NCBI GenBank assembly: GCA_002269645.1
Contig: NIVC01002942.1
Coordinates: 1-64,000 of the forward strand
Reading direction: 5' to 3'
Source: Macrostomum lignano
Lineage: Eukaryota
Length of the DNA stretch: 64,000 nucleotides
Below are positions 1-52,653 of the stretch, in pieces. Below the pieces are notes generated by a model. That model saw only the letters and a program-made list of their open reading frames with translations, had not been told where the DNA came from and did not search any database. The stretch's first letter is position 1. Each line of letters starts with the position of its first letter. Both the position numbers and the translations under genes were made by a program.

Positions 1-1820
1 CCACAGTTAGTAATTTTATTGATGCATTGTTCAAGACACCACTTACTTCTTGACTGATAACCAACCTCTTTTATTAATTTGTGCTAGGGCTGGTTGTGGC
101 CTGTCTATTCTTATTGGTAAATTCAAAACATCAGGACTCAGTGGTGCTGCATAATCAGACCCTAGAGTTCTAAGAAGTAGGTTGTCCTCAACTCCCTTGC
201 CATTTCCACCAGCGCCATCAAACATTATAAAGTTTTCAACATTCTTACCCATTAGAGCTGTGGCTATAACGGATTCCCAACTTTTTCTATTTTCTGGATC
301 GGGATGAATTTGGTTATGCAGATTAACAATGAAGCCATAGTCGTAATCACTCACTCCAAGTACATCCGAGTAATTATATCCCACCGATTTAGTAACGTAA
401 TCGTCATATCTATACTCGCGAAACTCACCTGTAAGGAGGTCGTATACTCCATCGTTAAACCCTAGCAAATTCCATTTCATGTCGAATTCAATTTCATTGT
501 TAGTAAACCTCTCTTTGAACAAAGTAGTTACCTGTTTGAGTTTGTTGGCTCCTTGTATTGAATTTATATTCTTTATTGTACTCTGTAGTTTCTTTTCAAG
601 TGCTTTTAACTTCTCTTTATCATCAGCCGCCTTCTTAATTGCAATTTCGAGTCTAGTCTTTCGGTGGTTTAACTCACTGCTGACAAGTGTGATATTTTAA
701 GAAATATGTCATTTATACTACTTAGTTCTCTCCACTTATCATCATCAAAATAGTAAATACCATCGCTATTGTAAATTATATTATTCTTCTTATATTCATA
801 AACAAAGTTGGTTATATTAACGTCAGTGAAATTATCATCAAGAACTCAATCCTACCATAATAATCATATTTGCTTTTCCATTCCTTATATTTTTATAGTT
901 TTCTTCACTTGCCCATTTCTTAGTACCGATAGTAAGTCTGTCCTGTGCATCAGCAGAGCTGGTACTGGTGCTATTCCACACCTTTTTACATGATTCGGAA
1001 TCGAACTTATCATAATTTACTTTTGACCAATCAGTGAATACTTTGTACATTTCATCACCACTGTCTATGTCGCGGAGTATAAGTGCTACCTTGTACCAAG
1101 AATCATAGTCTTGGTTTTTGTGTTGTATTATACTTAACAACTTTGAAGCTCCTTCACAAGTGGGTGTGGAACGGTGCTTTTTAGTGCCTGTTTATCGGGT
1201 TCTTGTTTTCTTTTTTATCCTGTGGCTTTATTAATCTATTTATCTCATCAAGAATTACATCTCGCATGTCTATTAAACATTTGGACTTTGTACGTTTGTA
1301 TTCCTAATTTCACCATCGACATAATAGAAACCTGGTGGAGCAAATACTAAGGCGGGAATATCAAAACCCACACTTTGTTGAATCGTTACTTTCAATCCAT
1401 CTACTTTGTTAAAGTAAAAGTGGTGTCCCTTGTTTGTCTGAACAACCCAATCACAATGAGTCATACACAGTTCATTCAACTCAGGGCATAGGTCAGCATT
1501 ATCAATATCGATTACGGTTATATTTGAGTTTCTAGTATCTATCCAAATCATGTTGTCTACATCTGGTCGAAATGGTGGTGAGGTTGAATTCCTATCTGCT
1601 TTGTTGGCATTCCTGATGGTATTTTTTTCTTTGTTTTACTATTCCATGTTACACTGCAACTTCCGAATCTAAAATTAAGTTCTTCATAGAGATTAATTAG
1701 TTTATCGTACGATTTTGTTTGTTTTAAATTTGTCAATCTTGGTGGTGGGACATCATGTTTTGAAGCGGATCCTGTACGATCACAGGAGAGAAACTTGAAT
1801 CGTTTTGATTTTTTCTTTCC
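1..1820 (-). pseudogene. Prim-pol + PriCT-2 + D5-like SF3 helicase, broken by several frameshifts; runs off the left edge
   Basis: 1273-1551: TVIDID...QTNKGHHFYF (AEP prim-pol motifs). 838-1140: YDSWYKVALIL...FTDWS...W (PriCT-2). 43-522: LLGFNDGVYDL...DYVTKSVGYNY (D5-N) and Walker A GAGGNGKG. Confidence 0.85.
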
Positions 1821-2654
1821 ATTTTATTTAAAATAAATTTAACAATATAATTCATCAGTTTCAATGTACTTCTCAAGGGTTATGGGGAGTTTGAAAATGT
1901 TCAACTTAAGCATGACGAAAAATTCATCATTCCTTATGTGCTGTCTCGAAATCAATGCCCATTTATCAACATGTGCAAGATATACTCTGAATGAATACAA
2001 ATATGGGGGCATTTACAATCGCTGTGTTTTAATATTTCTGCTTTATATTCATCGTAAGCTTTATCAATTTCTTCAATTAGTCGAGCCTTTCGAGTGGTGT
2101 TTTTATTTGAGAGAAATTTATAATAGAATCATAATACTTTTGTGGCAGTGCATTTCGTACATTTGGGTTAGCTTCCATTTTTCTATGAAAAATTTAACAT
2201 TTTTGCTTTCTTTTGGGCAAATTTCTATAGATAATCCAACTTTAGCATTTTCTGTGTATCATTATACTTTGTCTTCTTAAATTTTCGCTACTTTTGCGCC
2301 TACTTCATTGGCAGCTTTTTTATTATTGACTGCCTTTGCGATTCCGGCAGCACCTGCCTGTCTTATGAGAGGTAGATTGTCTTTTAGTAAGTTGGAATGG
2401 TGCTTCTAGTATCAAAATACCTTCTCCATTGTACTCTAGGGCTCACCTATTGTATACTCTCTTAGCTTGCGTGGATCTGTAACGGGGCACATTTTTGTCT
2501 ATTTTTAGAAACAGAAAAATAAACACAGGAACAGAAAGACTTTCAGACACCAAAGGCCAAACTCCATTGGGCTAAATGTGGCCTGCTCAAAGCGATGATA
2601 TATTTGTTTAAATTATTACCTTAATAAATGTTTGATATCAAGTCATGTTGATAA

Positions 2655-2924
2655 TTATGGCGCATTAGATGGTTCTATATCAGCGCGGCATGTTGGGCAC
2701 CTAACCATGTTGCCCTCTTGAATTCCGGTGCGATAACATATTTCACAAACCACAGCTCGACAACATGCCATGGTAACGTTTGGTGGCCGTGGTTCGTGTT
2801 GGCAGATTGGACAAAGCCCTTGATTATTCCCCGGCTGAGCTGGATGGTTCTGTACTTGAGTCGGGTTATCCTCTGGTTGAATATCAGCTAGTTGGTGCTC
2901 CATATCTTGGCGATAAGCAACCAA
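2655..2924 (-). CDS. RING-finger protein (putative E3 ligase); may join the 3040-3231 ORF through frameshifts
   Basis: CPIC-x9-CC-x4-CxxC-x11-CPTCR RING-like pattern. Confidence 0.7.
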   Translation of the reverse strand: MVAYRQDMEHQLADIQPEDNPTQVQNHPAQPGNNQGLCPICQHEPRPPNVTMACCRAVVCEICYRTGIQEGNMVRCPTCRADIEPSNAP

Positions 2925-3338
2925 GCGCCTCTCTGCTTCTTGAACGCGACGTTTTTGAAGATAGTAGTTCTAGGAAAGGGTTTGGTGCGCTCGTATATGA
3001 TTTTTGTAAACTTAAAACCTTATAATGTAAAAACACTTTTTAACTAACCTTTAGCTGATTAAAGAAGCGCTCTTCATTAGCCAAATTTTGTGGGTTATAC
3101 TCCAAAAAGATGTTGATGGCAATATCTCTAAACATTGAGTTCCTATGGTGTTGTCGCAAATTTCGCTCACGAATTCTAAGAGTTGCTCTAGCGGCAGTAA
3201 GCCTCTCGTGCAAATTCGAGAAAGAAGGCATTGTAGGAATGATATTTGTAAGAAGGTAAAGTTAGTAGAGAAAAATTACTAGACCTTGCCGCTCGTGGCC
3301 ATTCATTTATATATTTTTATGACAAAACGTCAGACCCC

Positions 3339-3439
3339 GCATTCCATTCAGACCAAAACACGAGACCAATTTTTATCTTTTTATTTTTCGAAATTTTCTT
3401 CTCGCGTTTTGGTCTCGCGTTTTGGTCTGAATGGAATGC
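3339..3439. repeat. 31-bp inverted repeat with a 39-nt AT-rich spacer
   Basis: GCATTCCATTCAGACCAAAACACGAGACCAA (3339-3369) pairs with TTGGTCTCGCGTTTTGGTCTGAATGGAATGC (3409-3439), 1 mismatch. Confidence 0.9.
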
Positions 3440-3444
3440 ATGAC

Positions 3445-3930
3445 TCAGTGTAGCAAGAGTATAAGATAAAAAATATAAAACCCCGAATTCCTGTGTTAGT
3501 CATCGAGTGAAGTTTGCCTACTTGCTTTGCTATCTTGGTCGGACAATAGCCGACCATATTGTTGCGGTGCGAGCTTGCTTCTGTGTAGCAAGAGTAGATG
3601 AAAAATATAAAACCCCGAATTCCTGTGTTAGTCATCGAGTGAAGTTTGCCTACTTGCTTTACTATCTTGGTCGGACAATAGCCGACCATATTGTTGCGGT
3701 GCGAGCTTGCTTCTGTGTAGCAAGAGTATAAGATAAAAAATATACAACCCCGAATTCCTGCGTTACTCATTGAGTAAAGTTTGCCTACTTGCTTTGCTAC
3801 GGTGGTTGGACAATAGCCGACCATATTATTGCTCTGCGAGATTGCTTCTGTGTGTAGCAAAAGTAGATGAAAAATATACAACCCCGAATTCCTGCGTTAG
3901 TCACTGAGTGAAGTTTGCCTACTTGCCAGC
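3445..3930. repeat. Tandem repeat of 132-135 bp, about 3.5 copies, inside the element
   Basis: CCCCGAATTCC recurs at 3481, 3613, 3748 and 3882; units carry the hairpin GGTCGG-N7-CCGACC. Confidence 0.9.
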
Positions 3931-4021
3931 TTCCTAAGATAGTAATTTTTTGTTTATTGACCCCGTTGGGAGTTTTTGTACTTATGTTGTGTTTTTATGG
4001 TGACTATGGTATTATGTCTAA

Positions 4022-5399
4022 TTATGTGACAATTATGTCTAAAATCGGATAAAGTTGAAAGCCTGAAACAATAAGAACAGTTGATCCTTCAGTGGCTGAA
4101 TTAATATGCACTCTATAACCGGAGAATTTTTCGGTGGAAGCTACTTCAAAATATTTCATCACTCCAGGAACTAAACCAGCATTTTCGGTAGAAAAAATAT
4201 TCCTAAAGTCTCTCTTGTTATTGCTCCCTTTCAGAATAAAACTTTTTGGTTGATTTTTTATAATTTCACTACCTACTGCTTTGGTTCCTTTCAATCCGAA
4301 TTTCCAAATTTGAATAGATTCAGGAAGTTGTACTTCAATGTAAGAATTGGGTTCATTCCTCGATGCCCATTCTGAATTAGATACTATATAACCCCAATTA
4401 TCTGACGTTTCAAATGCTCCTGATGACGCTACATTGAAACCCCTTTCTCTATAGTTTTGACGTGTTGCTAGTGAGGGAATATATCCTGTATAAGATTTGA
4501 AACCTAGTCCCCGCCTTAGTCGCAGCTCCACTGATTCAAGTGCATTGTCTACGTATAGCTTTGGTACAGCTTGAAGTCTATCTATAGGCCACACTAAATC
4601 ATTAACCACTGTTTGTCTCTCAAGTAATTCAACTTTTGTAAGCTTTACGGAACCAGAAAAATTAAGAGAATAATGGAAATAATATGAGGGTTTGGGTATT
4701 TTTTTCCTAAGATGTGCATTGCCCCTTCGTAGTTCAATGGGTGCACTTTGTTCAACAGGTGTCCAGTTTGTTCCATTTAGGCTCACACTAACAGACCAAC
4801 CAGGCCACACCTCTCCTTCCAACTTTATCTCTACAACTTTCCTAGCTCTTTTCAAAATTGAAATCGTATCCACTTGTCTGAGTCATCTGCACTGCTCCAT
4901 TCTGAAGCGGGTTTGAATCTGCAACATGATATGCTGCTGAAGAGTTATGAGAAGCGGTCACTTTCATGTCAGGATGGGAAGCGTTTGAAGTCAGTAATGA
5001 AAGAATATTGACTAATTTCGAACTCTCTGTACCTCCCGCAGTACCTTGCCTTTCTGCTAACAAAGTGTCAATCTCAGTTTTAGAATACATCTTAGTGTCA
5101 ATTTCGGTTTTAGAATACATCTTAGTGTCAGTTTCGGTTTTTGTGTAGACATTGTTTACGCGCCCATGAGCATCGTCAATTAATTGTAGCATGGTGATAT
5201 TCATTGCGTCACTATCTTCCTTTGAATAAGAGTCTGAAACATTTCTCTTTGCTAACAATAAATTATCTATTTCCTCTCTCTTATATCCTTCATTTTCATT
5301 GATGTATCGATCATCAGCTAACGCTATTGTTATTCCAGGTGCTATATCATTTGAATTTGACGAGTAACCAAATTGATTAGCAGTATTCTTGTAACTCAT
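4022..5399 (-). CDS. Fibre-like / receptor-binding protein with YSKTEID repeats and F5/8C (discoidin)-like domains; frameshifted near 4860-4920
   Basis: YTKTETDTKM/YSKTEIDTKM/YSKTEIDTLL stalk repeats. C-terminal SEWAS...YIEVQLP...IWKFGLKG...PKSFILKGSNN...YRVHI. A second discoidin start (SEWSSADDSDKWIRFQF) is present in another frame. Confidence 0.6.
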
Positions 5400-5827
5400 T
5401 TTAATTGCTGCAAAATTTCATTATAGCTATCTCCTTTATCGATTCGATGTAAAAAGTACAGCGACATTTGACCACAAAATTTCTTATCTAAAGTTTGAAT
5501 TTGTTCTTCCATGTCTCCACATATTCTATTCTTTGTGTGATTAAACTTTTCCATAATTTCCAGTGTGGGCGGTAGTGCATAGGAATCAAAAAAATAAACC
5601 TTATCATGAGCTGAAAAGATAGCTGAATGATGTATACCCCGTTCTTTCGAAGTGTGAATATTTGTCATAAAGTAACCATACTGTGGTAAATCAACAATTT
5701 CATCTCTCATGGCATAGCGAAATGGTTTTAACTTGAGATATTTTGCCCAATTTATCAGATCAATATTAGTCGTAGTGTCAGTCCCAAACTTTTGTTTAAA
5801 TGCATTCCATGTCTCAGCTTCGCTCAT
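5396..5827 (-). CDS. Adenain-like (Ulp1-fold) cysteine maturation protease
   Basis: GIHHSAI...YFFDSYALPP...QIQ...FCGQMSLYFL (His, Asp, Gln, Cys); ATG at 5827 in TAAAAATG context. Confidence 0.88.
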   Translation of the reverse strand: MSEAETWNAFKQKFGTDTTTNIDLINWAKYLKLKPFRYAMRDEIVDLPQYGYFMTNIHTSKERGIHHSAIFSAHDKVYFFDSYALPPTLEIMEKFNHTKNRICGDMEEQIQTLDKKFCGQMSLYFLHRIDKGDSYNEILQQLK

Positions 5828-5836
5828 TTTTAACAC

Positions 5837-6627
5837 TCATATTTGTCGTACGTGTAGATTTATAAATATTTCCTCGCCATCAAAGTCGTATAGAACACCA
5901 GACTCATCTTCGATGACAAAGTCGAATGTGCTCAACATGTTTGTAGTTAGTGGTAGGTACACAGGATTTGCAGGCTCTTGAATAATTTTACTTCCCATTG
6001 GGACAGAGAACGATGGAATTGAAAGAAGTATTTGCTTATCAATTAAATGATTTCCATTGGCTGGATCAGTGATAAAACCCCCTTTGATATTGAGACAACG
6101 AACCATGATCGCACTTCTAGCTCCGTCTATCCGAGCTGGATTTGGAGCTCTCTCAAATGGTTTCAAATACACTTCCGAATTGAATCCCAACAGTCTTCTA
6201 AAGTTATTGGAATGTGCATCCCTGAAATCAACTTGATACTCTGTGGCTAACCGTAACTCAACCCTACGCGTGTCTAGGCTTGCACTGAAAACAATAGCCC
6301 CTCTTTCCAATCATTTGCAGCTGTTAGCAATCTTTGAATCTCGCTTGACAGACTTTTAACTTCCCAAGATCCTGCTTGAATCTTTATTTTCTTCCATGTT
6401 CTACCACTATCCCTCGAGTATCGCAACTCATTATTGCCTCCTTCAATATTGTTAATAGCATCAAAGACTGCAAACTTTTTTATACCAGCTTCGTATTCTC
6501 GATCTTCATACAAATTTATCGGAGTGCCTAGAGTTTGTCGAAATGGGTTTTTAATTGAAAAGAAGTCAAATGTGCGTTGAAACTTTTTACTCAAGAGGAT
6601 GTTGACTTTTTCTATTTCTTTTTCCAT
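5837..6627 (-). CDS. Minor capsid protein (penton), one frameshift near 6290-6300
   Basis: Joining the 6274-6627 and 5837-6310 ORFs gives INNI..GNNELRY...IKIQAGSWEV...YQVDF...RLLGF...EPANPVYLP...FDGE, typical of Polinton pentons; lies next to the protease and ATPase. Confidence 0.8.
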
Positions 6628-6629
6628 TT

Positions 6630-7359
6630 TTAAGCAAGTAATTCTACTAGCTCTTTATCAACATTGTTATGTCCCTCTGCTTTTGCGGCTAGTAATGTCA
6701 ACACTCTTTCACTGAGTCCAGATCCCGGTTTTACTCGATATCCTGGTGGATTATCTTTCAATATCCTTACTGCTTGCTTATAATTCCCACTTGATTTGGC
6801 CGCTGGATTTTTACAGTGTTCAATGAGGTTAACATAATCCTGCAATGTTTGCATCTTGAATTGCTTCAGCTCTTCACCATTTTCAGTTACTTTAGGCATT
6901 TTGAACAACTCTTCAAGATCTTCAGAAAATGGCATTCGGAATTCGTTGACAATGATGTCCGACCTTGTTCATGGAATTCAACCTCTATTACAGATGATCC
7001 AAATATATATCCAGCATCAGTTTTTTGAATCCGTATACTAGGCGCTGGTCTTTGAGTTATTGGAATCTTTCCAATTTCTTCAATTATTTTGTCAAATACT
7101 TCCAGAGGTTCAAATCGTCCTTTTGGTGTACTTAATTGCGGAACTGGAACTTTTTGATTCTGAAGTTTATCAACAAGGTTGGCATTGAATCAATAAATTC
7201 ATCAAGCTTTTCTGTGACAGGTTTTTGAGCTAATGGAGCCACTCTTGCATATAAACTCTCTTCTCCAATTTTCAAATAGCGTTGAGCATCATTTCTGGAT
7301 TTGTACGTTTCTCGCTGCTTTGCTAAATTAATGAGTTCTCTTATATATTCATTAGTCAT
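6630..7359 (-). CDS. Conserved Polinton hypothetical protein, probably one ORF split by frameshifts
   Basis: Contiguous coding segments in shifting frames between ATPase and penton; FSEDLEELF...YVNLI...KPGSGL segment. Confidence 0.45.
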
Positions 7360-7361
7360 TT

Positions 7362-8135
7362 TTACAATGGGATTTTAGTTAGAACATCCTTATACAAATC
7401 TTGCTCATCCTCATCAGCTCTTGTATTTATATAGATATAGCCATACTTCTTTTTCCAAGCCTCTCTACATTTAGCCTTGAATATAGCGGGTTCATAATTC
7501 GTTTCTATATTTCTAGCAATGTGATTTAAGTTTGTATCTTTTTGTTTAAAGATTATGTAACATGTCGTATTCTCCCTGACAGTATTGCGATCTAGTTTGG
7601 TAAAATTTTGAGCTAGATAAAAACCACAACAGTTTCCATGCCTGCCTCTCTGAAACAGACTTTCCTGAAATGTTTGATTAGCCTCTCCCAAAACATCGTC
7701 CAATATCACACATGTCTTTAGTCCATTATGAAAAATTTCTTCATTTGGAGTATGGGAAAGAGTGACAGGAATTTTCTCTATTACTTCTGAATTTTCTGAT
7801 GTGCTTTGCACTCGACCAGGGTTGGCTGCCTCTCGACAAATATGTCTAATATCTTCAGGAGATGCATCCTCACTCACCTGGTAGACATGATAGAGTGAGT
7901 TGATAAGAGAAGGTGGGAGACCATTTTCAAAGCCATATTTTAGAAACTGATACTCTGGATCCATTTGAGATGCTCTGGGAACATATAAAACTAACTCATT
8001 AAAGTCAACTAGTTTTTCAGGACTTGTAAGAATATGGAATAGTAAATATGTTTTACCCGTATTTGTAGCGCCGATAATACAACATAAAAGAGGATTAGGG
8101 AAAATAGGATCATGCTGAAATTTTACTTTGGGCAT
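7362..8135 (-). CDS. A32/FtsK-like DNA packaging ATPase
   Basis: Walker A GATNTGKT, Walker B CVILDD, arginine finger RGRH, YLAQ motif; intact 257 aa. Confidence 0.93.
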   Translation of the reverse strand: MPKVKFQHDPIFPNPLLCCIIGATNTGKTYLLFHILTSPEKLVDFNELVLYVPRASQMDPEYQFLKYGFENGLPPSLINSLYHVYQVSEDASPEDIRHICREAANPGRVQSTSENSEVIEKIPVTLSHTPNEEIFHNGLKTCVILDDVLGEANQTFQESLFQRGRHGNCCGFYLAQNFTKLDRNTVRENTTCYIIFKQKDTNLNHIARNIETNYEPAIFKAKCREAWKKKYGYIYINTRADEDEQDLYKDVLTKIPL

Positions 8136-8156
8136 TTAAAAAAAGAAAAAATGACC

Positions 8157-9521
8157 TTATTCGACGCGGGTCATTTGATATTCACTGGTAACTTTTATTA
8201 CATTCTTTGTTTGTTCAAGAATTAGTGCAAAAGCAGTCAGCTCAACATTTGTTGACTTCTTGATAAATAATTGAATATTCACTCCACTCTTGACCAGAAA
8301 CTCATCTTGAGCTGTTAGATCAAAGCAAAAGATTGGATAGATGGTTAGAAAGTCTTGTTTATTGAATGGAGGAGTTACACCGAAACGGCTGCAGATGTCT
8401 TCGTACATTTCATACGCTCTGTGAATGTCTTGAGCTACTGGATCAATTTCAACATAATCATTCGGATACATCACCTGATTTAATCTGACTTGAAGCTGGG
8501 TTATTTTCACTGCATTTGCTCCAGTTTTGTAAGACACATACTTGTGATCATTAACTATATATGATGGGTTGTTTACGTCATATTTGAAAGCTACAAAGAT
8601 TGCAAGTGGCATATTGGAGATGTTGGCTATGTTCCATGTATATGGACTTCCTTGAATGAGTTGTGGTGGAACCGTTACCCTCTCTGGAAATGATACTGTA
8701 ATGTCCTTGTTGAGTGATTTTAGAAAAGCTGCTTCAGCACTGGGTGACAAAGTAATAGCAGGGATCCAAATCTCAAAGCTATTAATAGTTAACTTAGCTT
8801 CCGTCCCGGCAGCTCCAAAGAAAATTTCAGCATCGTTAGTCTTTCTTGTCCATGTGAATTTATATTTAATTCCTTTGCTAATCTTCTGCCAATCAAGGAA
8901 CCCAATGAGAGGTGTTAATGATAGTTTGATTGTTCCACCTCTGTTTGGAGCATTAGTGACATTGTTATAATTTTCAAGCCTCCTAATGTATCCAGTATTC
9001 GAATCCTTCTTATTGAGTCTATTTTTCATAGCGATTGCTGCAGTTCTCACAGCTTCAGCATCTGCGTTGTTTGCTAGAGGTATATCAGAAACAGTCCCAG
9101 CATCTCCAGTGTCTGGAATCCATCCGTATGCTTCTCCAACTTCATTCATTAATTTTGAGTACATTACGGACTTTAAGATTGTGTCATACTCTCCAGGATC
9201 ATTATAGACTTTCTTTGTTCCTCCAATGTCAACTATGAGTTGAGAGAAAAGTCTCATAGGCCAATTATGTTCTAGAGTAATGTTCGTATTCAAGTCGGTG
9301 TTATCTCGTTGTGTTATTGAGTATTTTATACAACCGAATGCCTCTGACATGAGAATGTATGACTCTGTTGAATTGACTTCATGAACTATTTGACCTCCTG
9401 CAACATTGAGATTATTAGTGCTACCTGGAGTTGGAGAAATCTTAATATAGTCTTCTTTCTTTTTGAAAAAGCTAAAAGTTTTGTCCTCATATATGCTCAG
9501 TATATCCTTTTTGTTCTCCAT
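8157..9521 (-). CDS. Major capsid protein (Polinton/adintovirus hexon-like)
   Basis: Intact 454 aa; TNNLNVAGGQI...ITLEHNWPMRLFSQL...PGEYDTIL and C-terminal YPIFCFDLT; position in the morphogenesis block. Confidence 0.85.
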   Translation of the reverse strand: MENKKDILSIYEDKTFSFFKKKEDYIKISPTPGSTNNLNVAGGQIVHEVNSTESYILMSEAFGCIKYSITQRDNTDLNTNITLEHNWPMRLFSQLIVDIGGTKKVYNDPGEYDTILKSVMYSKLMNEVGEAYGWIPDTGDAGTVSDIPLANNADAEAVRTAAIAMKNRLNKKDSNTGYIRRLENYNNVTNAPNRGGTIKLSLTPLIGFLDWQKISKGIKYKFTWTRKTNDAEIFFGAAGTEAKLTINSFEIWIPAITLSPSAEAAFLKSLNKDITVSFPERVTVPPQLIQGSPYTWNIANISNMPLAIFVAFKYDVNNPSYIVNDHKYVSYKTGANAVKITQLQVRLNQVMYPNDYVEIDPVAQDIHRAYEMYEDICSRFGVTPPFNKQDFLTIYPIFCFDLTAQDEFLVKSGVNIQLFIKKSTNVELTAFALILEQTKNVIKVTSEYQMTRVE

Positions 9522-9541
9522 TTTTATAAGAGAAATTTCAA

Positions 9542-9994
9542 CTAAGCTTCATGAGGTCTAAGAATTATCCCATTACCCTGTTTCTCCTTTTCAACTTTAA
9601 ACGTCTTTAGCAGCCACTTGACTGCTTCGCTGGGTACTTGTTCGACTCTTTTAGCCGCATCAACTAATACTCCACTCCCTTGAGCCTTTTTCAACTCTTC
9701 TAGTTTTTGCCGTTCAATGCTTTCTATTGTCTTATTATGTTTAGCATTGTTGGCTGTATTAACACTTTTTGCAATCATTGTACCAACTCCTGAGGCTGCT
9801 CCGATACCACCCAAAATTGCTGGTAGTAAGCCTAATAGAGGAATTATTCCACCTTCATGTTCTTTCTGTTTCTCTTGCAATTCTCGAATCTTCTCTTTAG
9901 AAAGATATTGCTTTTGCTTATTTACAGTAACATATCTTGGTTTTCCCTCTCGAACATATCGATTGAGTCTTGCTTCAGTGTTTTTCTCGCTCAT
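9542..9994 (-). CDS. Small basic virion core/membrane-active protein
   Basis: EGGIIPLLGLLPAILGGIGAASGVGTMIAKSV amphipathic segment followed by a coiled coil and QGSG/QGNG motifs, as in Polinton small structural ORFs. Confidence 0.6.
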   Translation of the reverse strand: MSEKNTEARLNRYVREGKPRYVTVNKQKQYLSKEKIRELQEKQKEHEGGIIPLLGLLPAILGGIGAASGVGTMIAKSVNTANNAKHNKTIESIERQKLEELKKAQGSGVLVDAAKRVEQVPSEAVKWLLKTFKVEKEKQGNGIILRPHEA

Positions 9995-10002
9995 TTTTAA
10001 GG

Positions 10003-10425
10003 TCAGAATTTCTTCAAACCATTGCCTTGTCTCAAAGACACTTGAGACTGTTCTGCTGTTCCTAGAGCCTTTTTAACAATATCTTGAATAGCCTTATTTG
10101 ATTGAGAAGCTATCTGTTGCTCTTCTTCCATTCTTTTCTTTGCTTCTTTATCTCTACGTTTCTTTTTAATATATTCCAGTTCCTCACCTGCTTTAGACAT
10201 GTCACTGTATGATTTCTTCGCATCGAATATGTTCTTCGCTGTGGTAGCTGTTTTACCTATTGCATCAGCTCCACTCACAATTTTACTTCCATGATTTGAT
10301 AAAAAGTTTGTGACACCACTGATCATATCACCAATTCCTTCACCCTCTTTATCAGCTAGTAGTTGTGAATCAGACGTTTCAATCTGACCTTTCGCCCGTT
10401 TGCAGTTTGTTCGATAGGCGCTCAT
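10003..10425 (-). CDS. Small virion core protein
   Basis: EGEGIGDMISG..., lysine-rich C-half, terminal QGNGLKKF; ATG at 10425 in TAAAAATG context. Confidence 0.55.
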   Translation of the reverse strand: MSAYRTNCKRAKGQIETSDSQLLADKEGEGIGDMISGVTNFLSNHGSKIVSGADAIGKTATTAKNIFDAKKSYSDMSKAGEELEYIKKKRRDKEAKKRMEEEQQIASQSNKAIQDIVKKALGTAEQSQVSLRQGNGLKKF

Positions 10426-12616
10426 TTTTAGTTGAAAAATTTGCTGGTAGAAGCTGGGATTTGTAAAATGATCCAATGATTTCTTCTCCATTCTCATCCT
10501 CAATAATGTAGGTTATGGGATTGGAGTAAACTATTTTCTTTATCCTAAACACTTCTGAAATTTTCCAATATCCTCTTCGACCCTTTTCAAAGTGCTCCTT
10601 ATATCTATAGATATGAACTTTGTCACCTACTTTGAAGTTTGGTTTCTCATTTGAATACTCGAAAGTTGGCTTTGGTACTCGCTCAGGATGTTTAGATGCT
10701 TCTGAAGGAGTTATCAGAATCTCAGAATGGATTGTGTTGTTGTATTTTTCAACAATAGCTGGCAATGTGTGGAGCCACTTCTGATTACCCTGTAGATCAA
10801 ATTCAAACCAGAGTTTATTTGTGAGAGTACGATTGAACCTCTCAATCATTGCATTCTTGGACTCGCCATAAATTGAAAACATCTTGTTAATATATTCACC
10901 CTTTCATCCTTCTTTCTAATGTTGTCTTTTGAAAACGAGTATAGCTTGTACATATGCTGATTATAAAACTCCTTGCCTTCATCTACACAAAGTCTCTCTG
11001 ATCGTCTTCCTGATTCCTTAAATACTTTTTGGAAAGCTTCTGCAACTTCCGCTCCCGTCTTTGTTTTCAAAGGAACTGCCCAGGCGTAACGTGTAAAACC
11101 ATCTATGATAGTTAGAGCATATTTGTAACCTCTTTCGGGCGGTAGGATAATGATATCTGCATGCCAAATTGTGTCTTTTGCATAGTGAATCATTTTTCTA
11201 AATACTCTTGGCTTTCGATATTCTTTATGCAATTTTACTGCATCTTCATAGCTAAGACCCTTACCATAAATTGTTAGACAGTCAATACAATTGTTGGGGT
11301 TGTGAGTATGAATGCCTAATCCAAACCGAACTTTAGCCTTGATAATACGCTTTACTAGATTTCGAATGAGTCTCTCTTTCACAGACAAGTCACTGGTTGG
11401 AATAGCATCTAAATCAGCTATCATTTTTTCATCAGCTATATGCTTCTTTGCTAGAGCTTCCTCTGGATTTGAAGAAGTGTTTTCAGCATCTCTATAGTTT
11501 TTGTCATGATAGTAAGCAGTCCAATCGATTGGGTTAATTGGTAGACTGTCATACCGAGGCCGGTCTGTAATTGGATTGAGTCTCTTGTCTAAATTTGTAC
11601 CCGGCAGTTGTTCCTCAATCTTTCGAAAGAGGCTGGACTTTATCTTAAGGCTTCATCAGGATTGACCAGATCCTTCAGCCCCACCCCCATTAAGTCTCTG
11701 AACCTTCTCCATATCCTTGTCAACTTCGTTCGGACTTAGGAGCTTGGCTGCGGATTTCCACCATGTCCTCAAGCTTGTTACCATCGAACCATAGGTTCGC
11801 GGACGAAGTCCGATTGGGAACAGGAATTACCTGTGTTCCTTCAGAAGATTTCTCAACTGAAGTGGTACTTGAGGCTGTTATTGACGTACTAGAATCGGAC
11901 GGAGTTCCCGCAATTTGAAGGTGTCGCCAATCACTAAGCACTTGTTTAATGTTGGTTATAATGTTTTTGTATTGATCACCATAAAGAAATTTCAATGCAA
12001 ATTCTCCTGTTATAAGGGTGATTCCATTGTCTAGTAAAATATTCTTAGGTTCCTTTGTAGTTCTATTGATGCATACATAATACAACTGATAGGTGGGATA
12101 AGAATTTTTATAGTCTAATAGTTTCTGATAATTCCTTTCACGACTTGATGAATTGTCCGTGTTATCAGAAGATTTAAGCTCTAATGCAATCTTTCGCTCA
12201 ACGTGAACCAGGTCTATCTTTTTTACCTTCTCGAATCCAAAATAATTTTCTGCTAATATTTCATATAGTCTGCCTAGTCTCATTTGAATAACTTTAATCT
12301 TGTGTGAAATTATTAACTCTTCTTGGAAAAGATCATGAAGAATTTGATCATGCCCAACCTTATCATCAATTGGTTTCAGAAGAATTTCTCGAATTGTTTG
12401 CTCCATTTTTACTATAGAAACTTTAACAAGTGCTTATTTGATGACTAGCAAGGACATTGACTTCCTCACTCAGGCCACTACGTAACCTGCAAAAGAATAC
12501 CCTGGAATATGAAGTTCTCCTGGGTATTTTCCAGTGGCGAAGATGGGTGGTAGTTTTGTTATAGCTGACTGAATATCTAAAGCATTTCCTAGAAATAATG
12601 GTTTACTGAAGGCCAT
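10379..12616 (-). CDS. Parvovirus-type PLA2 domain fused to a retroviral-like (rve) integrase; exon 1 12616-12485, exon 2 from 11604; one frameshift near 10860-10880
   Basis: Exon 1 is 44 codons ending ELHIPGYSFAG. Exon 2 continues PGTNLDKRL...NPIDWTAYYHDKNY (PLA2 motifs) in frame with the 10846-11424 ORF. The DDE triad is WHAD / LCVDEGKEF / IERFNRTL, and the C-terminus is YIIED..GEEIIGSFY. Confidence 0.9.
11605..12484 (-). ncRNA. Group I self-splicing intron (IC1-like core), 880 nt
   Basis: 5' exon ends in U, which pairs with G of the IGS (CAGGU/GCCUG, 12471-12475); the intron ends in omega-G. P AAAUUGCGGGAA (11905-11916), Q AAUCCGCAGC (11747-11756), R GUUCAGAGACUU (11692-11703), S AAGAUAAAGUCC (11635-11646). 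P3 CACCUUC/GGGGGUG, P7 GACUU/AAGUC, P5a A-rich bulge GGUAACAAGCU, and a P9 hairpin. Removal restores the conserved FAGPGT. Confidence 0.95.
11720..12406 (-). CDS. Intron-encoded PD-(D/E)xK endonuclease, Eco47II-restriction-enzyme-like (putative homing endonuclease)
   Basis: Intact 228-aa ORF starting between P1 and P3. QMRLGRLYE...KIDLV...IALELKSSDNTDNSSSR..YQKL resembles the Eco47II-family Q..IG...D...E.K...NT.NS.S pattern (recognised from memory, no search run). The last ~70 codons overlap the ribozyme core. Confidence 0.72.
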   Translation of the reverse strand: MEQTIREILLKPIDDKVGHDQILHDLFQEELIISHKIKVIQMRLGRLYEILAENYFGFEKVKKIDLVHVERKIALELKSSDNTDNSSSRERNYQKLLDYKNSYPTYQLYYVCINRTTKEPKNILLDNGITLITGEFALKFLYGDQYKNIITNIKQVLSDWRHLQIAGTPSDSSTSITASSTTSVEKSSEGTQVIPVPNRTSSANLWFDGNKLEDMVEIRSQAPKSERS

Positions 12617-13030
12617 TTTATATATATAAAATTTACTATCGTTGAATTGGATGACACTTTCATATTGTATATACCTGAAATTGCATTAAATTGACCCGTG
12701 AATCCAACTTTTCTCATGGTTTTAGAGCTGGAATCGTGAAAATTGCACTTTTTAAAAAAATTAGAAAATCACAAAAAATCGCTGTTTTCAGACCATTTTC
12801 ACCTGTTTTTAGTCATTTTTCACTTATTTTTAGTGATTTTCAAAATGAGTGAGGGCATGAGGGCGAGGGCACCCCCCCTTTTTAAAAGTATAAAAATTCC
12901 GGAAAATCTGTGTTCGGTGAAATATTCCACAGGCCAATGCCCCCCACATGCCCTCACCCTCAACACCCTCACTCACAGATATATGTATATTTACATATCA
13001 CACACCCACTTGAATCCATGACCTCCTGGT

Positions 13031-13130
13031 AGTAGTAGTATGTTATAAGGGGCTGAGTCATCCAGCGAGCTGGCGCGCAATGCGCCCGAGCAATTAAGTG
13101 TGGCGCAGCCCCTTATAACATACTACTACT
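13031..13130. repeat. 100-bp unit bounded by perfect 25-bp inverted repeats; probable element terminus
   Basis: AGTAGTAGTATGTTATAAGGGGCTG (13031-13055) and its exact reverse complement (13106-13130); flanks CCTGGT and CCCATT are not a TSD. Confidence 0.8.
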
Positions 13131-13322
13131 CCCATTCCCAATACCCCATCGCTAATACCCCTTGTCTCAGCCCGCAGCCGGCTCCGGTTTGTGCCCCTTT
13201 TCAGTTCTCTCTCTTTCCTTTCTCCTTCTCTCCCATCTCTCCCATATCTCCCATATCTCCCATCATACATTGCCCAAGTCAATCTCGACCGCTATCCAAT
13301 TCAACCCGAACTCCCTTTCCAG

Positions 13323-16300
13323 CCTCTCTGTCTACGTGGTGGATCTGATGCAGTTCATCCTGCTGACCTTCGAGAACCACCTCACGATCGTGTTCGGCTG
13401 CATCCTGACGGTGTGGAGCCTGCTCACCACCGAGGCCTGGAAGCGGTATGAGAGCAGCCTGAGCTACCGCTGGGACGTGAATCACCACTACATCGCAGAG
13501 AACCGCCGGCCCGCCTACGTGCTGAGGAAGAGCCGCTGCCAGCCCGTGAGTGGATCTGCGGCAGTGCTCAGCTAATCCCCACAGCAGCTTGTAATCTCAT
13601 TTTCATCCGGCTTTGCAGATATGGTGCACCCAGCAGACCACCAGGCGGAAGTGCATCGGGTTCTACTCCTGCGTGCTGTCCTGCGTGAGCGGCTTGGGCT
13701 GGCTGCTGACTGGCTGCATCACATCGCATCACATCACATCACATCACATCACATCACATCACATCACATCACATCACATCACATCACATCACATCACATC
13801 ACATCACATCGCATCACATCACATCACATCACATCACATCACATCACATCACATCACATCACATCACATCACATCACATCACATCGCATCACATCACATC
13901 ACATTATGTCAAATGACACTAGAACACATCACATCACATCACATCAAATTACATTAGAATACATCACATCAAACCACATTATATAAAGGAAATTAGAATA
14001 CATCGCATCATATCACATCACATCACATTACGTCACAACACATATCACATCAAATGACATTAGAACACATCACTAAACTTCATGTCACATAACATCACAC
14101 CAAATCACATTAAACGATATCAGAACACATCCCACCACACCATAGCACATCACATCAAACCCTATATCGCCAGAGCACAACCGCTTTCTCAACCCACCGC
14201 CAGGTGATTCTGGTGTTTGCCATCACGGTGGGTTTCCAGGTGGCCCGGCTGGTCGGTGACAGGTCCTACTGCACAGCCGAAACCTCCGCCTTCTCCTGCT
14301 TCATTGTCAGCACCGTGCTGCCCATCACCGGCCAGGTCATCGTGATCTCCATTCTGGACTCGGTCAGTCCGGGCTGGGGATGGCGGGACAGAAAAGACCG
14401 AATGAAATTCTCATCTCACAGCAGGCGGATCACTTTGTGCACGCGCCTGACTCTCGCGCCACGAGCCCCGGTTCCATTTGGGGCTGGTGCGCACTAAAAT
14501 TGGCCCAGGGGAATGCCGCACGATTTACACCCGAGCCTCCCAAATCACAGAGAGTGTACATGCCTGACGATTAGAAAGCCAGGGCCACTGTACACCCTGT
14601 TGTGAGCGTGCGCATGAGTGCTTGTCTGCGCACGCCCTAACCAGTATCCACAGAGCAGTACATTACAATACATAAAAGTACATTACAGTGCATTAAAAAA
14701 ATATTACAGTACACTACAGTGCATTACAGTACATTAGACTACATTACAGTACATTATCAGTACATTATATTACACTGCAGTACATTACAGTACATTATCA
14801 GTACATTACAGTACAATACGCTCGTACAGTACATTAAAAACATTACAGTACACTACAGTGCATTACAGTACATTATCACTACATTACAGTACATTATCAC
14901 TACATTACAGTACATTATCACTACATTACAGTACATTATCACTACATTACAGTACACTACAGTGCATTACAGTACATTATCACTACATTACAGTACATTA
15001 TCACTACATTACAGTACATTATCACTACATTACAGTACACTACAGTACATTACAGTACATTACAGTGCATTACAGTACATTACAGTACATTAGAGTGCAT
15101 TGCAGTACATTAGAATACATTACAGTACACTAGAGTACATTATAGTACATTAGATGCAGTGCAGTACATTACAGTACATTATCAGTACATTACAGTACAT
15201 TACAGTACATTAGAGTGCATTGCAGTACATTAGAATACATTACAGTACACTAGAGTACATTACAGTACATTAGAATACATTACAGTACACTAGAGTACAT
15301 TACAGTACATTAGAGTACATTACAGTACATTAGAGTACATTACAGTACATTAGAGTACATTACAGTACATTAGAGTACATTACAGTACATTAGGGTACAT
15401 TACAGTACATTACAGTACAGCACCCGCGCGCTTGTATGTGCTCAGAAGTCAGCAGAATGAGCAGTTACTCCCTCAGCACTGGTTGTGCGGGACAATGTCG
15501 CCGATGCGTTGCGCCAGGGAGCCCGCAGCCCTCATAAGCGAGCATTTGTGTTTATTTTGATCAAAGAGTGAATCGCCTTTTACCTTGCAGCTGTACAGCG
15601 TGCTGGCCAAAGCGGTGACCAACTGGGGTGAGCAGTTTGTCAATTTTTTATCAGGGACGAGTTCGGTTCCAAGGAGGGAATAATACGCTAAGGAGACAGG
15701 AACTTTCCGTTTCTTCGGCGCAAAAGTATCCTGCCGTTAAATATGAATTTCTTCCATATATTATGAATATGAGTTTAGTTTTAAAAAGCAAAAGCGAATA
15801 AACAATCTTTGAACTTTTGCAGAGTGTCACGAGTATCCGACAGACTACGACAACTCATTCGCCATCAAGGCCTTCGCCTTCCGCTTTGCCAACAACTATG
15901 CTCCACTGTTCTATATCGCCTTCGTGCGGCAGGTGAGGCCGGCTGCCGTAATGCCCTCCAGTGCCCACCTTCCAGTGCCCTCCCTCCAGTGCCCTCCCTC
16001 CAGTGCCCTCCCTCCAGTGCCCTCCCTCCAGTGCCCACCTTCCAGTGCCCTCCCTCCAGTGCCCTCCCTCCAGTGCCCTCCCTCCAGTGCCCTCCCTCCA
16101 GTGCCCTCCCTCCAGTGCCCTCCCTCCAGTGCCCTCCCTCCAGTGCCCACCCTCCAGTGCCCTCCTTCCAGTGCCCTCCCTCCAGTGCCCTCCCTCCAGT
16201 GCTCACCCTCCAGTGCCCACCTTCCAGTGCCCTCCCTCCAGTGCCCTCCCTCCAGTGCCCTCCCTCCAGTGCCCACCTTCTAGTGCCCTCCCTCCAGTGC

Positions 16301-33390: not shown

Positions 33391-34167
33391 TCAGATGAAC
33401 GGGTTGAGGCACTCGCACAGAGCTCGGATCAGGCGGGAGGGCAGCGACTCCTCCTCGTCGTCCAATCCGTAGTCGTGATCGAACCAAATGTCGACCCGAT
33501 TGTGTTCGGCGCCCTCGTTCGGCTGGCCGCTGCCCCACGCCTCGGGCTTGATGGCGATGTTGCAGTCGCGCCAGTACCAGGTGCCGGAGCTGAGCGGGGA
33601 AGGCCGGTAACCGCCCAGGTAGAAGCTGCGCTTTGAGGAGCTTAAGTCCTTATTGAGAATCGGCATCAGAGTTCGGATGTGCTCCACCTCCGGCCTGTCG
33701 ATTCCGTCGGCGAACTTGGCGAGTCCGGGCTCCGAGTTGCACTTGTTGAGGCCGTCCGTCCAGCTCGACACGCCCACCATCTTGTAGACGGAGCTGCGAT
33801 AGCCGTTGGCGAAGTCGGCAGGGCACAGCCGGCCGTTCGGCAGGCCCTCCAGGCTCCTCACGAAGGCCCAGCCGGAGCGGTCGCAGCCGGCCTCGTTCGG
33901 CATGTGGCTGCACCTGTCGAACTCCATCGTCTGGCAGACGGAGCCGTCGTCGCCAGTCAGTCGGAAGCCGCGGCATCGGACGCCGCGGTTGATGCAGATT
34001 ACGCTGCACTTCACATTGCTGGGTCTTGCCAGCGGGGTGTTGTGGAGAAACTCGGGCCTCAGGCACAGCCGAATAAAGTGCTTTGTGAACTGCTGGGTGC
34101 TGAGCTCAGCTGCGGCAGAGCAGCTGGATCCCAGCAGGTACAGCAGAAGTAGCTTCCAGTGATTCAT
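33391..34167 (-). CDS. Secreted PAN/Apple + C-type lectin protein, copy 1 (intronless)
   Basis: Signal peptide; CSVICINRGVRCRGF..CQ (PAN-like); SWTDGLNKC..FYLGG..WYWRDC..WGSGQPN..GLDD..ALCE (CTLD). Confidence 0.85.
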   Translation of the reverse strand: MNHWKLLLLYLLGSSCSAAAELSTQQFTKHFIRLCLRPEFLHNTPLARPSNVKCSVICINRGVRCRGFRLTGDDGSVCQTMEFDRCSHMPNEAGCDRSGWAFVRSLEGLPNGRLCPADFANGYRSSVYKMVGVSSWTDGLNKCNSEPGLAKFADGIDRPEVEHIRTLMPILNKDLSSSKRSFYLGGYRPSPLSSGTWYWRDCNIAIKPEAWGSGQPNEGAEHNRVDIWFDHDYGLDDEEESLPSRLIRALCECLNPFI

Positions 34168-40144: not shown

Positions 40145-40921
40145 CTAGTAGAATGGGTCGACGCACTCGCACAGAGCTATGACCCAAGAGGCTCCGGACT
40201 CCACTTCGTCGTCCAGGCCGAAGCTGCTGGAGTAATTGTACCAAATGTTTGTCCGGTTGTGCAGACCGTTCTCATTCGGCTCGCCGCTGCCCCACGCCTC
40301 GGGCTGGATGGTGGCGTTGCAGTCGCGCCAGTACCAGGTGCCGGAGCTGAGCGGGGAAGGCCGGTAACCGCCCAGGTAGAAGCTGCGCATCGACGAGCTC
40401 AGGTCTCCATTGAGGGTGGACTTGAAAGTACCGATGTGCTCAACTTCCGGCCTGTCGCCTGCGTCAGCGAACTTGACGAGTCCGGGCTCCGAGTTGCACT
40501 TGTTGAGGCCGTCCGTCCAGCTCGACACGCCCACCATCTTGTAGACGGAGCCGCGATAGCCGTTGGCGAAGTCGGCAGGGCACAGCCGGCCGTTCGGCAG
40601 GCCCTCCAGGCTCCTCACGAAGGCCCAGCCGGAGCGGTCGCAGCCGGCCTCGTTCGGCATGTGGCTGCACCTGTCGAACTCCATCGTCTGGCAGACGGAG
40701 CCGTCGTCGCCAGTCAGTCGGAAGCCGCGGCATCGGACGCCGCGGTTGAGGCAGACCGCGCTGCACTTCACATTGCTGGGTCGGGCCAGCGGGGTGTTAT
40801 GGAGAAACTCAGGCCTCAGGCACAGCCGAACGAAGTGCTTTGTGAACTTCTGGGTGCTCTGCTCAGCTGCAGCAGCGCTCCAGGACGCAAGCAAGCAGAG
40901 AAGTACCGTCCAGTAAGACAT
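40145..40921 (-). CDS. PAN + C-type lectin, copy 2 (EPN motif)
   Basis: Same architecture as copy 1; WGSGEPN. Confidence 0.85.
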   Translation of the reverse strand: MSYWTVLLCLLASWSAAAAEQSTQKFTKHFVRLCLRPEFLHNTPLARPSNVKCSAVCLNRGVRCRGFRLTGDDGSVCQTMEFDRCSHMPNEAGCDRSGWAFVRSLEGLPNGRLCPADFANGYRGSVYKMVGVSSWTDGLNKCNSEPGLVKFADAGDRPEVEHIGTFKSTLNGDLSSSMRSFYLGGYRPSPLSSGTWYWRDCNATIQPEAWGSGEPNENGLHNRTNIWYNYSSSFGLDDEVESGASWVIALCECVDPFY

Positions 40922-51879: not shown

Positions 51880-52653
51880 TCAGGCAAACGGATCGATGCA
51901 CTCGCACAGAGCTCGGATCAGGTAGCTCGCCGACTCCACCTCGTCGTCCACGCCGTATGGATGGCCGTGCCAGACGTTAATCCTGTCGTGCGAGTCGCCT
52001 TGGTTCGGCTGACCTATGCTCCAAACCTCGGGCTCCAGCGTGGCGTTGCAGTCGCGCCAGTACCAGGTGCCGGAGCTGAGCGGGGAAGGCCGGTAACCGC
52101 CCAGGTAAAAACTGCGCTTCCAATAAACAAGGTCTACATTGGAGATATTTTTCAGAGTGTGCATGTGATCGACCTCCGGCCTGTCGATTCCGTCGGCGAA
52201 CTTGGCGAGTCCGGGCTCCGAGTTGCACTTGTTGAGGCCGTCCGTCCAGCTCGACACGCCCACCATCTTGTAGACGGAGCCGCGATAGCCGTTGGCGAAG
52301 CCGGCAGGGCACAGCTGGCCGTTCGGCAGGCCCTCCAGGCTCCTCACGAAGGCCCAGCCGGAGCGGTCGCAGCCGGCCTCGTTCGGCATGTGGCTGCACC
52401 TGTCGAACTCCATCGTCTGGCAGACGGAGCCGTCATCGCCAGTCAGTCGGAAGCCGCGGCATCGGACGCCGCGGTTGAGGCAGACCATGCCGCACTCTAT
52501 ATTGCTGGGGTCGGCCAGCGGGGTGTTGCGGAGAAACTCGGGTCTCAGGCACAGCCGAATAAAGTGCTTTGTGAACTGCTGGAAGCTGAGCTCAGCTACG
52601 GCAGCGCTCAAGGACGCAAGCAGGCAGAAGAGAAGTACCGTCCAGTAAGACAT
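51880..52653 (-). CDS. PAN + C-type lectin, copy 3
   Basis: Same architecture; WSIGQPN. Confidence 0.85.
   Translation of the reverse strand: MSYWTVLLFCLLASLSAAVAELSFQQFTKHFIRLCLRPEFLRNTPLADPSNIECGMVCLNRGVRCRGFRLTGDDGSVCQTMEFDRCSHMPNEAGCDRSGWAFVRSLEGLPNGQLCPAGFANGYRGSVYKMVGVSSWTDGLNKCNSEPGLAKFADGIDRPEVDHMHTLKNISNVDLVYWKRSFYLGGYRPSPLSSGTWYWRDCNATLEPEVWSIGQPNQGDSHDRINVWHGHPYGVDDEVESASYLIRALCECIDPFA

Follow-up and report, generated by a model that had tools for sequence, protein, structure and literature searches.

A group I intron that probably moves by means of a restriction-type enzyme was found in a polinton-like virus (PLV) integrated at the start of a 64,000-nucleotide stretch of Macrostomum lignano DNA (contig NIVC01002942.1, positions 1–64,000), here called the window. 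The intron interrupted a gene for a phospholipase A2 (PLA2)-integrase fusion protein and contained an open reading frame (ORF) whose product is a nuclease from the Eco47II family, a group of type II restriction enzymes. From sequence comparison, we considered it fairly probable that the intron is mobile and that its homing endonuclease is this member of the Eco47II family. Homing endonucleases recognize sites of 14–40 bp, tolerate changes in them and behave selfishly; restriction enzymes read sites of 4–8 bp strictly and are paired with a methylase. The two groups have long been thought to be related, and the present locus looks like a direct bridge between them. Several points were new: the nuclease belongs to a named type II family, the 5-bp palindrome cognate to that family lies where the intron is inserted, and the host gene is identified; in addition, GGNCC and Gly-Pro dipeptides are lost throughout the PLV clade, and giant viruses have restriction–modification (R-M) homologs.

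Group I Intron in the PLA2-Integrase Gene

The intron was 880 nt long (12484..11605; the gene and the intron lie on the minus strand, to which the coordinates of both refer). It started with UACGUAGUGGCCUG and ended with the terminal (omega) G at 11605. The Rfam model Intron_gpI (RF00028) matched positions 11997..11614 with 88.9 bits (E = 1e-22; threshold 50), which was the only such match in the window. The ends of the intron were set at 12484 and 11605 because intron-less alleles of the gene fixed the junction. The limits of the Rfam alignment, which ended at 11614 and had P1–P2 inside the ORF, were set aside in favor of 11605, with P1 placed where these alleles put the 5′ splice site. The span given in an earlier note on this DNA started at 11720; the intron was real, but its 3′ part extended beyond that position to 11605.

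Exon 1 (12485..12616) had 44 codons (MAFSKPLF...HIPGYSFAG), was collinear with the intron-less protein P0017 and ended with TTT GCA GGT at 12485. Exon 2 (10379..11604), which was a frameshifted copy, opened with CCG GGT ACA at 11604 and encoded PGTNLDKRL...PINPIDWTAYYHD..Y, the PLA2 motif, followed by the integrase. Ligation of the two exons gave GCAGGT|CCGGGT. This junction contained GGTCC, which was destroyed by intron insertion, as the earlier note had claimed and the intron-less alleles confirmed. The spliced product was a parvovirus-type PLA2 domain (PF08398, 37.8 bits) fused to an rve domain (PF00665). Its intron-less homolog P0017, from the metagenomic locus L006, was 72% identical to the spliced protein and read YSFAGPGTNLDKRL uninterrupted; across the junction it had YSFAG-PGTNLDKRL, with GGGCC at that point. 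Compared with L006 by BLAST, the window carried an insert of exactly 880 nt, and a second intron-less allele (P0022 in L007) also gave the exact junction. Excision of the intron restored the reading frame and the PLA2 domain. The intron split the conserved YxGPG loop exactly between the Gly codon and the Pro codon that follows it. An insertion placed at random in the PLV would fall at GGN|CC with a probability of ~0.001. A spliceosomal GT-AG intron was also considered and rejected, and the possible GT-AG choices did not restore the frame.

The P1 helix and the internal guide sequence (12471..12484) were read from the sequence: CAGGU of the exon and UAC of the intron pair with GUGGCCUG, with a U·G wobble at the splice site. 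The pairing was CAGGU/GCCUG in the window and L004, and UUAGGU/GCCUAA in L001, L003, L005, and L008, a compensatory change. All introns (window, L001, L003, L004, L005, L008, and L021) ended in G before CCN GGT. The ribozyme core P3–P9 (11605..11928) was placed by a consensus fold of six intron cores, in which P4, P6, P7, and P8 were recovered and 30 of the 63 pairs showed compensatory changes. The ribozyme was complete, and its structure was maintained by covariation. Self-splicing with a guanosine cofactor is a prediction. No convincing candidate for a P10 pairing was found. The introns of L001–L003 were missed by Rfam in "gathering" mode, and the "evalue" mode gave the L001 intron at 77.3 bits. 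The ORF-less intron of L021 had no Rfam match; it was recognized by eye from P1, P4/P6, P7, and the exon junction.

Nuclease Encoded by the Intron

The intron ORF (11720..12406, minus strand) comprised 228 codons and was intact, as the earlier note had stated. It began 78 nt into the intron, and the frame of exon 1 stopped five codons into the intron. Residues 1–160 (12406..11927) formed an Eco47II-family nuclease of the PD-(D/E)xK class. This assignment, which the earlier note had made by eye, was borne out by the Pfam model RE_Eco47II (PF09553), whose curated cut-off is 25.9 bits and which scored 29.5 bits with the 228-aa ORF and 30.5 bits with the 159-aa core. PF09553 was the only Pfam match of the ORF even at E ≤ 10, and the alignment spanned profile positions 53–186 of 202. 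A profile of the intron clade found 329 relatives among 1.84 billion representative proteins, and 28 of the 31 sampled homologs matched PF09553.

The catalytic motif (12173..12214, minus strand) consisted of D65 (12212–12214), E76 (12179–12181), and K78 (12173–12175), identified by conservation in the family. It read I64-D65-x10-E76-L-K78-x3-N82-T-D-N-S-S-S88. Thus, the signature reported in the earlier note was present, but both of its spacings (x9 and x2) were short by one. Across 31 members of the family, among them the restriction enzymes of giant viruses, conservation of D65, E76, K78, D84, and N85 was at least 90% each. The TDNSSS motif (residues 83–88; 12143..12160, minus strand), recognized in the alignment as a family signature just past the catalytic strand, was invariant within the intron clade.

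The AlphaFold2 model of residues 1–161 had a pLDDT of 92 and a pTM of 0.84. The earlier note had suggested a structural search as a check. In Foldseek, the best solved match was EcoO109I, a restriction-type nuclease (TM 0.65, probability 1.0), followed by the DdmD nuclease domain, McrC, BbvCI, BamHI, and Hef, all of which are PD-(D/E)xK proteins. The predicted structure thus confidently indicated a PD-(D/E)xK fold. The dN/dS of the nuclease was 0.17–0.22 between unsaturated copies, and the intron nuclease was under purifying selection. Residues ~160–228 of the ORF were a read-through into the ribozyme core. This C-terminal tail was kept as RNA and not as protein, because relatives translated the same RNA in another frame (HLQIAGT vs. 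SKLRET).

No methyltransferase gene adjoined the ORF or was present anywhere in the sampled PLV elements, which were incomplete. The intron ORF had no match to PF11645, the family of I-Ssp6803I. PDB searches with the single protein sequence and with the profile gave nothing meaningful, and a fold search of BFVD gave weak, generic PD-(D/E)xK matches only. Neither tblastn against plasmids nor a search of IMG/VR with the nuclease sequence alone gave a match, and there was no model in NCBIfam. Scanning with the closest homologs from outside the clade found nothing either and gave no candidate for the immediate donor of the nuclease gene.

An element resembling TTTCT.T..TAAAAATG preceded the start codons of the intron nuclease (12407–12430) and of the capsid gene (9522–9545), both on the minus strand, and TAAAA|ATG was common to several other PLV genes. 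The start-codon element may be a shared promoter. It was not kept upstream of the nuclease gene in L004.

Avoidance of GGNCC in the PLV Clade

Eco47II and the homologous Mycoplasma system MhoV act on GGNCC (PMC12376442). At the ligated junction, GGTCC was the Gly-Pro codon pair (GGN CCN) of the YxGPG loop. This site could not be removed by synonymous change, because Gly-Pro is always encoded as GGNCC, which shows why the target cannot escape. The junction was GGTCC or GGGCC in every allele examined.

The window PLV (12.7–12.9 kb) contained no GGNCC at all. The expected numbers were 15.2, 13.6, and 10.3 under Markov-1, -2, and -3 models, respectively, and the minimum in 900 simulations was three. 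GGCC (12 vs. 13 expected) and CCNGG (17 vs. 15 expected) occurred at normal frequencies in the same element, and the other 15 XYNY′X′ palindromes showed no comparable depletion. GGNCC was likewise absent from the intron-bearing elements L003, L004, L005, L008, and L021, the last of which had 13 GGCC. The intron-less elements L006 and L030 had exactly one GGNCC each, at the homing site, and L007, also without the intron, had the homing site and one more at its left end. When eight clade elements were pooled (87.5 kb), one GGNCC was found and 37.5 were expected; the one was the homing site. GGNCC was by a wide margin the most depleted of 96 palindromic patterns in this pool. Outgroup PLVs and Polintons were normal, with observed/expected numbers of 5/3.6 (L022), 9/13 (L023), 7/9 (L025), and 3/3.3 (L010), and with 33 GGNCC in L029.

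The purge was also visible in the proteins. Gly-Pro dipeptides numbered zero in the ORFs of the clade, against ~32 expected, and Pro-Gly was normal, as were the outgroups. The absence of Gly-Pro therefore followed from the purge of GGNCC. The clade-wide loss of GGNCC everywhere except at the insertion site gave independent support for a retained 5-bp site. The purge of a 5-bp word argues for short-site recognition, and extra flanking specificity is possible.

The Gly-Pro-Gly of the PLA2 loop was altered in several integrase homologs, namely P0021, P0027, and P0032 (GAQ), P0023 (GTG), and P0028 (GPN). The GAQ and GTG variants, which lack GGNCC, may be cleavage-resistant alleles. Another palindrome, GCNGC, which shares its base composition with the purged GGNCC, was over-represented two- to fourfold in every clade element (window 1–12700, L003, L004, L005, L008, L021, L028, and L030), with a pooled number of 127 against 58 expected.

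Distribution of the Intron and of Nuclease Homologs

The intron was present in some alleles and precisely absent from others. L007 without the intron and L008 with the intron came from the same sample and, downstream of the site, shared 98.4% identity across 9.6 kb. Upstream, ~10 mostly synonymous differences were clustered in 27 nt, including TCA to AGC and CTT to TTA, and these differences made the exon fit the guide sequence of the intron. The cluster was likely a co-conversion tract. The same precise presence and absence was found between the window and L006. The intron also occupied the identical site in elements whose capsid proteins were just 25% identical.

Other states of the intron and the nuclease gene were observed in related elements. 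L021 contained an ORF-less intron of ~300 nt at the same site (GGT|CCT), and the ORF copy of L003 was truncated. In L028, a free-standing Eco47II-like gene (9441–9974) was located directly upstream of an intron-less integrase gene. Its product had YRINSMVK in place of TDNSSS, and L028 had no GGNCC because the GPG of its integrase had become GAQ. L030 carried a free-standing RE_Eco47II gene at 8135–8722 (minus strand), elsewhere in its genome, and presented an apparent self-targeting paradox. An IMG/VR scan with the integrase alignment yielded one useful locus, L021, and a metagenome scan with the capsid alignment yielded two distant loci only.

In giant viruses, the nuclease had homologs with a methylase partner. 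IMG/VR giant-virus contigs (L011–L020) encoded proteins 30–33% identical to it, each adjoining a C5 DNA methyltransferase gene (PF00145), and the IMG/VR query with the nuclease alignment returned giant-virus homologs only. These gene pairs were classical R-M systems. In the contigs GGNCC was not avoided, in line with protection by methylation. Some of the giant-virus methyltransferases had an N-terminal SAP/Rho_N-like extension.

Proposed Mechanism and Alternative Explanations

Here, a homing cycle was proposed for the intron. The ~160-aa nuclease would dimerize on the palindrome GGNCC and would cleave alleles that lack the intron at GGN|CC, within the sole GGNCC that remains in these genomes. 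If it acts like Sau96I and EcoO109I, cleavage would follow the pattern G^GNCC, with a 3-nt stagger bracketing the insertion point. Sau96I is an isoschizomer of Eco47II, and we take it to be a member of the PF09553 family. Repair of the break from an intron-bearing copy would transfer the intron together with a short stretch of the upstream exon, and the ribozyme would then restore the PLA2-integrase mRNA. The target would be lost only through the intron itself or through an amino-acid change, as in the GAQ and GTG variants. A 5-bp cutter would be tolerable because the clade purged every other GGNCC. This suggests how a cutter of short sites can be borne in the absence of a methylase: the genome is cleared of the site.

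Several points weighed against homing by an Eco47II-type enzyme. The Pfam score was modest, and the nuclease lacked the part that corresponds to profile positions 1 to ~50. Specificity can drift within restriction-enzyme families, and cleavage at GGNCC is a prediction. The 51-kb host flank contained 108 GGNCC, which would be many targets for a 5-bp cutter; expression of the nuclease would therefore need confinement in place or time. The window copy was decaying, with its integrase frameshifted and its primase fragmented, and its nuclease may never be expressed. L030 had a free-standing homolog and yet retained its single GGNCC, which encodes Gly-Pro in its own integrase. Finally, the giant-virus R-M systems could explain the avoidance alone.

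The last point leads to a different account, in which the purge was driven by Eco47II-type R-M systems of giant viruses attacking the PLV during co-infection. The intron would then matter mainly by splitting the irremovable site, and the nuclease may have evolved a longer, conventional site or may be dispensable. The pairing of each 30–33% identical homolog with a C5 methyltransferase fits this account, as does the lack of GGNCC avoidance in the contigs that carry them, which protection by methylation would predict. Clade members without the nuclease, L007 (intron-less) and L021 (ORF-less intron), also avoided GGNCC, and R-M has already been proposed as an anti-virophage weapon (PMC7253447). 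However, the avoidance followed the PLV clade that carries Eco47II-like genes, whether intronic or free-standing, and was absent from outgroup PLVs. Moreover, the intron nuclease was under purifying selection and retained its catalytic residues, and no giant virus from the same host was at hand. We judged this account, the chief rival of homing or a complement to it, unlikely; a purge by giant-virus R-M and homing are compatible with each other. A further explanation is that the nuclease is chiefly a methylase-less weapon against DNA of giant viruses, rival PLVs, or the host, so that site avoidance is self-protection and homing a by-product of the last site in the integrase gene. Free-standing versions of the nuclease in the related PLVs L030 and L028, in the latter beside an integrase without the site, are in line with this, and so is the finding of no methyltransferase in the sampled PLV elements. 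The lack of Gly-Pro across the proteome also implies strong and long-standing pressure. On the other hand, the window element and most loci were incomplete, and a methyltransferase could be missed; the L028 copy lacked the TDNSSS motif; and the intronic location, the alleles with and without the intron, and the likely co-conversion tract are classic signs of homing. A role chiefly as a weapon seemed rather unlikely, but it is compatible with the other readings.

We also considered a broader scenario, which was held to be possible but doubtful. A PLV clade would have carried a restriction enzyme without a methylase and protected itself only by deletion of GGNCC, which bans Gly-Pro, and its last site would have been split by the intron carrying the enzyme. 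The enzyme would serve both as a homing drive and as a weapon against unmethylated DNA of giant viruses or rivals, in a restriction arms race with giant viruses that have the same family plus a methylase. An ORF that is an inactive remnant drifting in a fixed intron was considered very unlikely. The host element was degenerating, the L003 copy was truncated, and an ORF-less intron exists, as the life cycle of homing endonucleases predicts; but the window ORF was intact with all family-conserved residues, and dN/dS between unsaturated copies had the low values given above. A reading without a group I intron, in which the stretch is a separate gene flanked by a small ORF and by the integrase gene or else a spliceosomal intron, was left with a negligible probability. 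Gene callers split the locus in that way, but the idea was refuted by the Rfam match, by the exact excision restoring the YxGPG loop and PLA2 domain, and by the intron-less alleles. With this locus, sequence data hint for the first time that the genomes of virophage-like elements are shaped by restriction, whether giant viruses exert it or are its target.

Comparison with Known Systems

A PD-(D/E)xK homing endonuclease, I-Ssp6803I, is encoded in the group I intron of a cyanobacterial tRNA-fMet gene (PMC3424549). It resembles the window nuclease in three respects: its gene lies in a group I intron, its fold is that of restriction enzymes, and it lacks a partner methylase. It differs in belonging to PF11645, in being bacterial, in its long target of ~17–23 bp, and in standing outside any named restriction family with short sites. 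The nuclease fold itself was therefore not new. Six or seven families of homing endonucleases are now recognized, PD-(D/E)xK included, and the view in the earlier note that these enzymes normally belong to four families was outdated.

With the Eco47II/MhoV R-M systems, the window nuclease shared the PF09553 model, the D...ExK motif and the cognate GGNCC, which was located exactly at the intron insertion point. It differed from them in having no adjacent methyltransferase, in its size of ~160 aa without the first ~50 profile positions, and in being encoded by an intron in a virus of eukaryotes. EcoO109I (RG^GNCCY; 1wte/1wtd) was the best solved structural match (TM 0.65) and has a GGNCC core; it differed in sequence (13% identity), in its extra flanking specificity, and in its larger C-terminal dimerization part. 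EcoO109I and BbvCI are the only previously characterized PD-(D/E)xK enzymes with a 3-nt 5′ stagger (PMC7337904). The R-M pairs of giant viruses, those of L011–L020 and those of chloroviruses and marseilleviruses (PMC7253447), belong to viruses that also infect eukaryotes, and the pairs of L011–L020 had the same nuclease family at 30–33% identity. In contrast to the window nuclease, they had a C5 methyltransferase partner, were free-standing and not intronic, and were not accompanied by site avoidance.

Group I introns in PLVs were reported in 2025 from cluster C3 of Rhodomonas lacustris and from Paulinella micropora, with Rfam matches of ~310–380 nt (PMC12220804). These are probably the same introns as here, a resemblance that would only hint at a cryptophyte such as Rhodomonas lacustris as the host. 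The PLVs of that study were similar in having a cysteine protease and an rve integrase and in a gap of ~14% GC to the host. The associated protein was called "unannotated", and there was no mention of Eco47II, of the PLA2-integrase as host gene, of the GGNCC junction, or of site avoidance. The literature searched contained no link between Eco47II and homing in this sense.

Zeng, Bonocora, and Shub reportedly described in 2009 a "collaborative homing", in which free-standing homing endonucleases target an intron insertion site in cyanophage psbA. The three stages of that model were present in the clade: an ORF-less intron (L021), a free-standing nuclease beside the target gene (L028), and a nuclease within the intron (window). 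The cyanophage case differs in nuclease family and site length, and the PLV host is a virus of eukaryotes. Site avoidance also has a parallel in phages. Staphylococcal phages are described as lacking target sites for the type I and II R-M systems of their hosts (PMC6346686); they resemble the PLVs as small viral genomes nearly or entirely without a short restriction site. In the phages, the enzyme is owned by the host, whereas the PLV clade itself carries the enzyme family and keeps one site that protein function demands.

The Integrated PLV and the Surrounding DNA

The first ~12.9 kb of the window were AT-rich (GC 36%, against ~50% in the remaining 51 kb), and all ORFs of this part were on the minus strand. 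It was an integrated PLV (1..~12900, minus strand), as seen from the drop in GC content, the Pfam matches, and the absence of GGNCC. The PLV ran past the start of the window, and its right border was located at ~12.7–13.0 kb. Its genes, by Pfam, included fragments of a Prim-Pol/PriCT/D5-helicase gene, an A32-type packaging ATPase, a double-jelly-roll capsid protein, and the PLA2-rve integrase, together with a discoidin-domain, fiber-like protein and a protease-like ORF.

Two genes of this copy were broken. The Prim-Pol/PriCT_2/D5_N helicase gene (43–1551, minus strand) was split into three ORFs. Rfam detected no second group I intron in the window, including at this gene, and the splitting thus looked like the decay of an endogenous copy. 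In exon 2 of the integrase gene (10846–10905), two overlapping ORFs were produced by a –1 frameshift in an A3 run at 10902–10904, where the relatives compared (P0016 and P0017) read KKDEKGEY. Either the gene was truly inactivated by mutation at this point, or the assembly contains a homopolymer error. A tandem repeat with four copies of 132–135 nt was found inside the PLV (3438–3926) and overlapped a 166-codon ORF.

The border between the PLV and the host DNA was marked by a GC-rich inverted repeat and a 34-nt hairpin (12849–12972 and 13027–13134). The remaining 51 kb consisted of repeat-rich eukaryotic DNA, with many micro- and minisatellites at 13657–13994, 31.2–31.9 kb, 41.6–43.3 kb, 44.9–46.2 kb, 55.9–56.6 kb. 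This part also contained four paralogous ORFs of ~258 aa (33391–34167, 40145–40921, 51880–52653, and 58870–59793 (–)). By eye only, their products looked secreted, cysteine-rich, and C-type-lectin-like.

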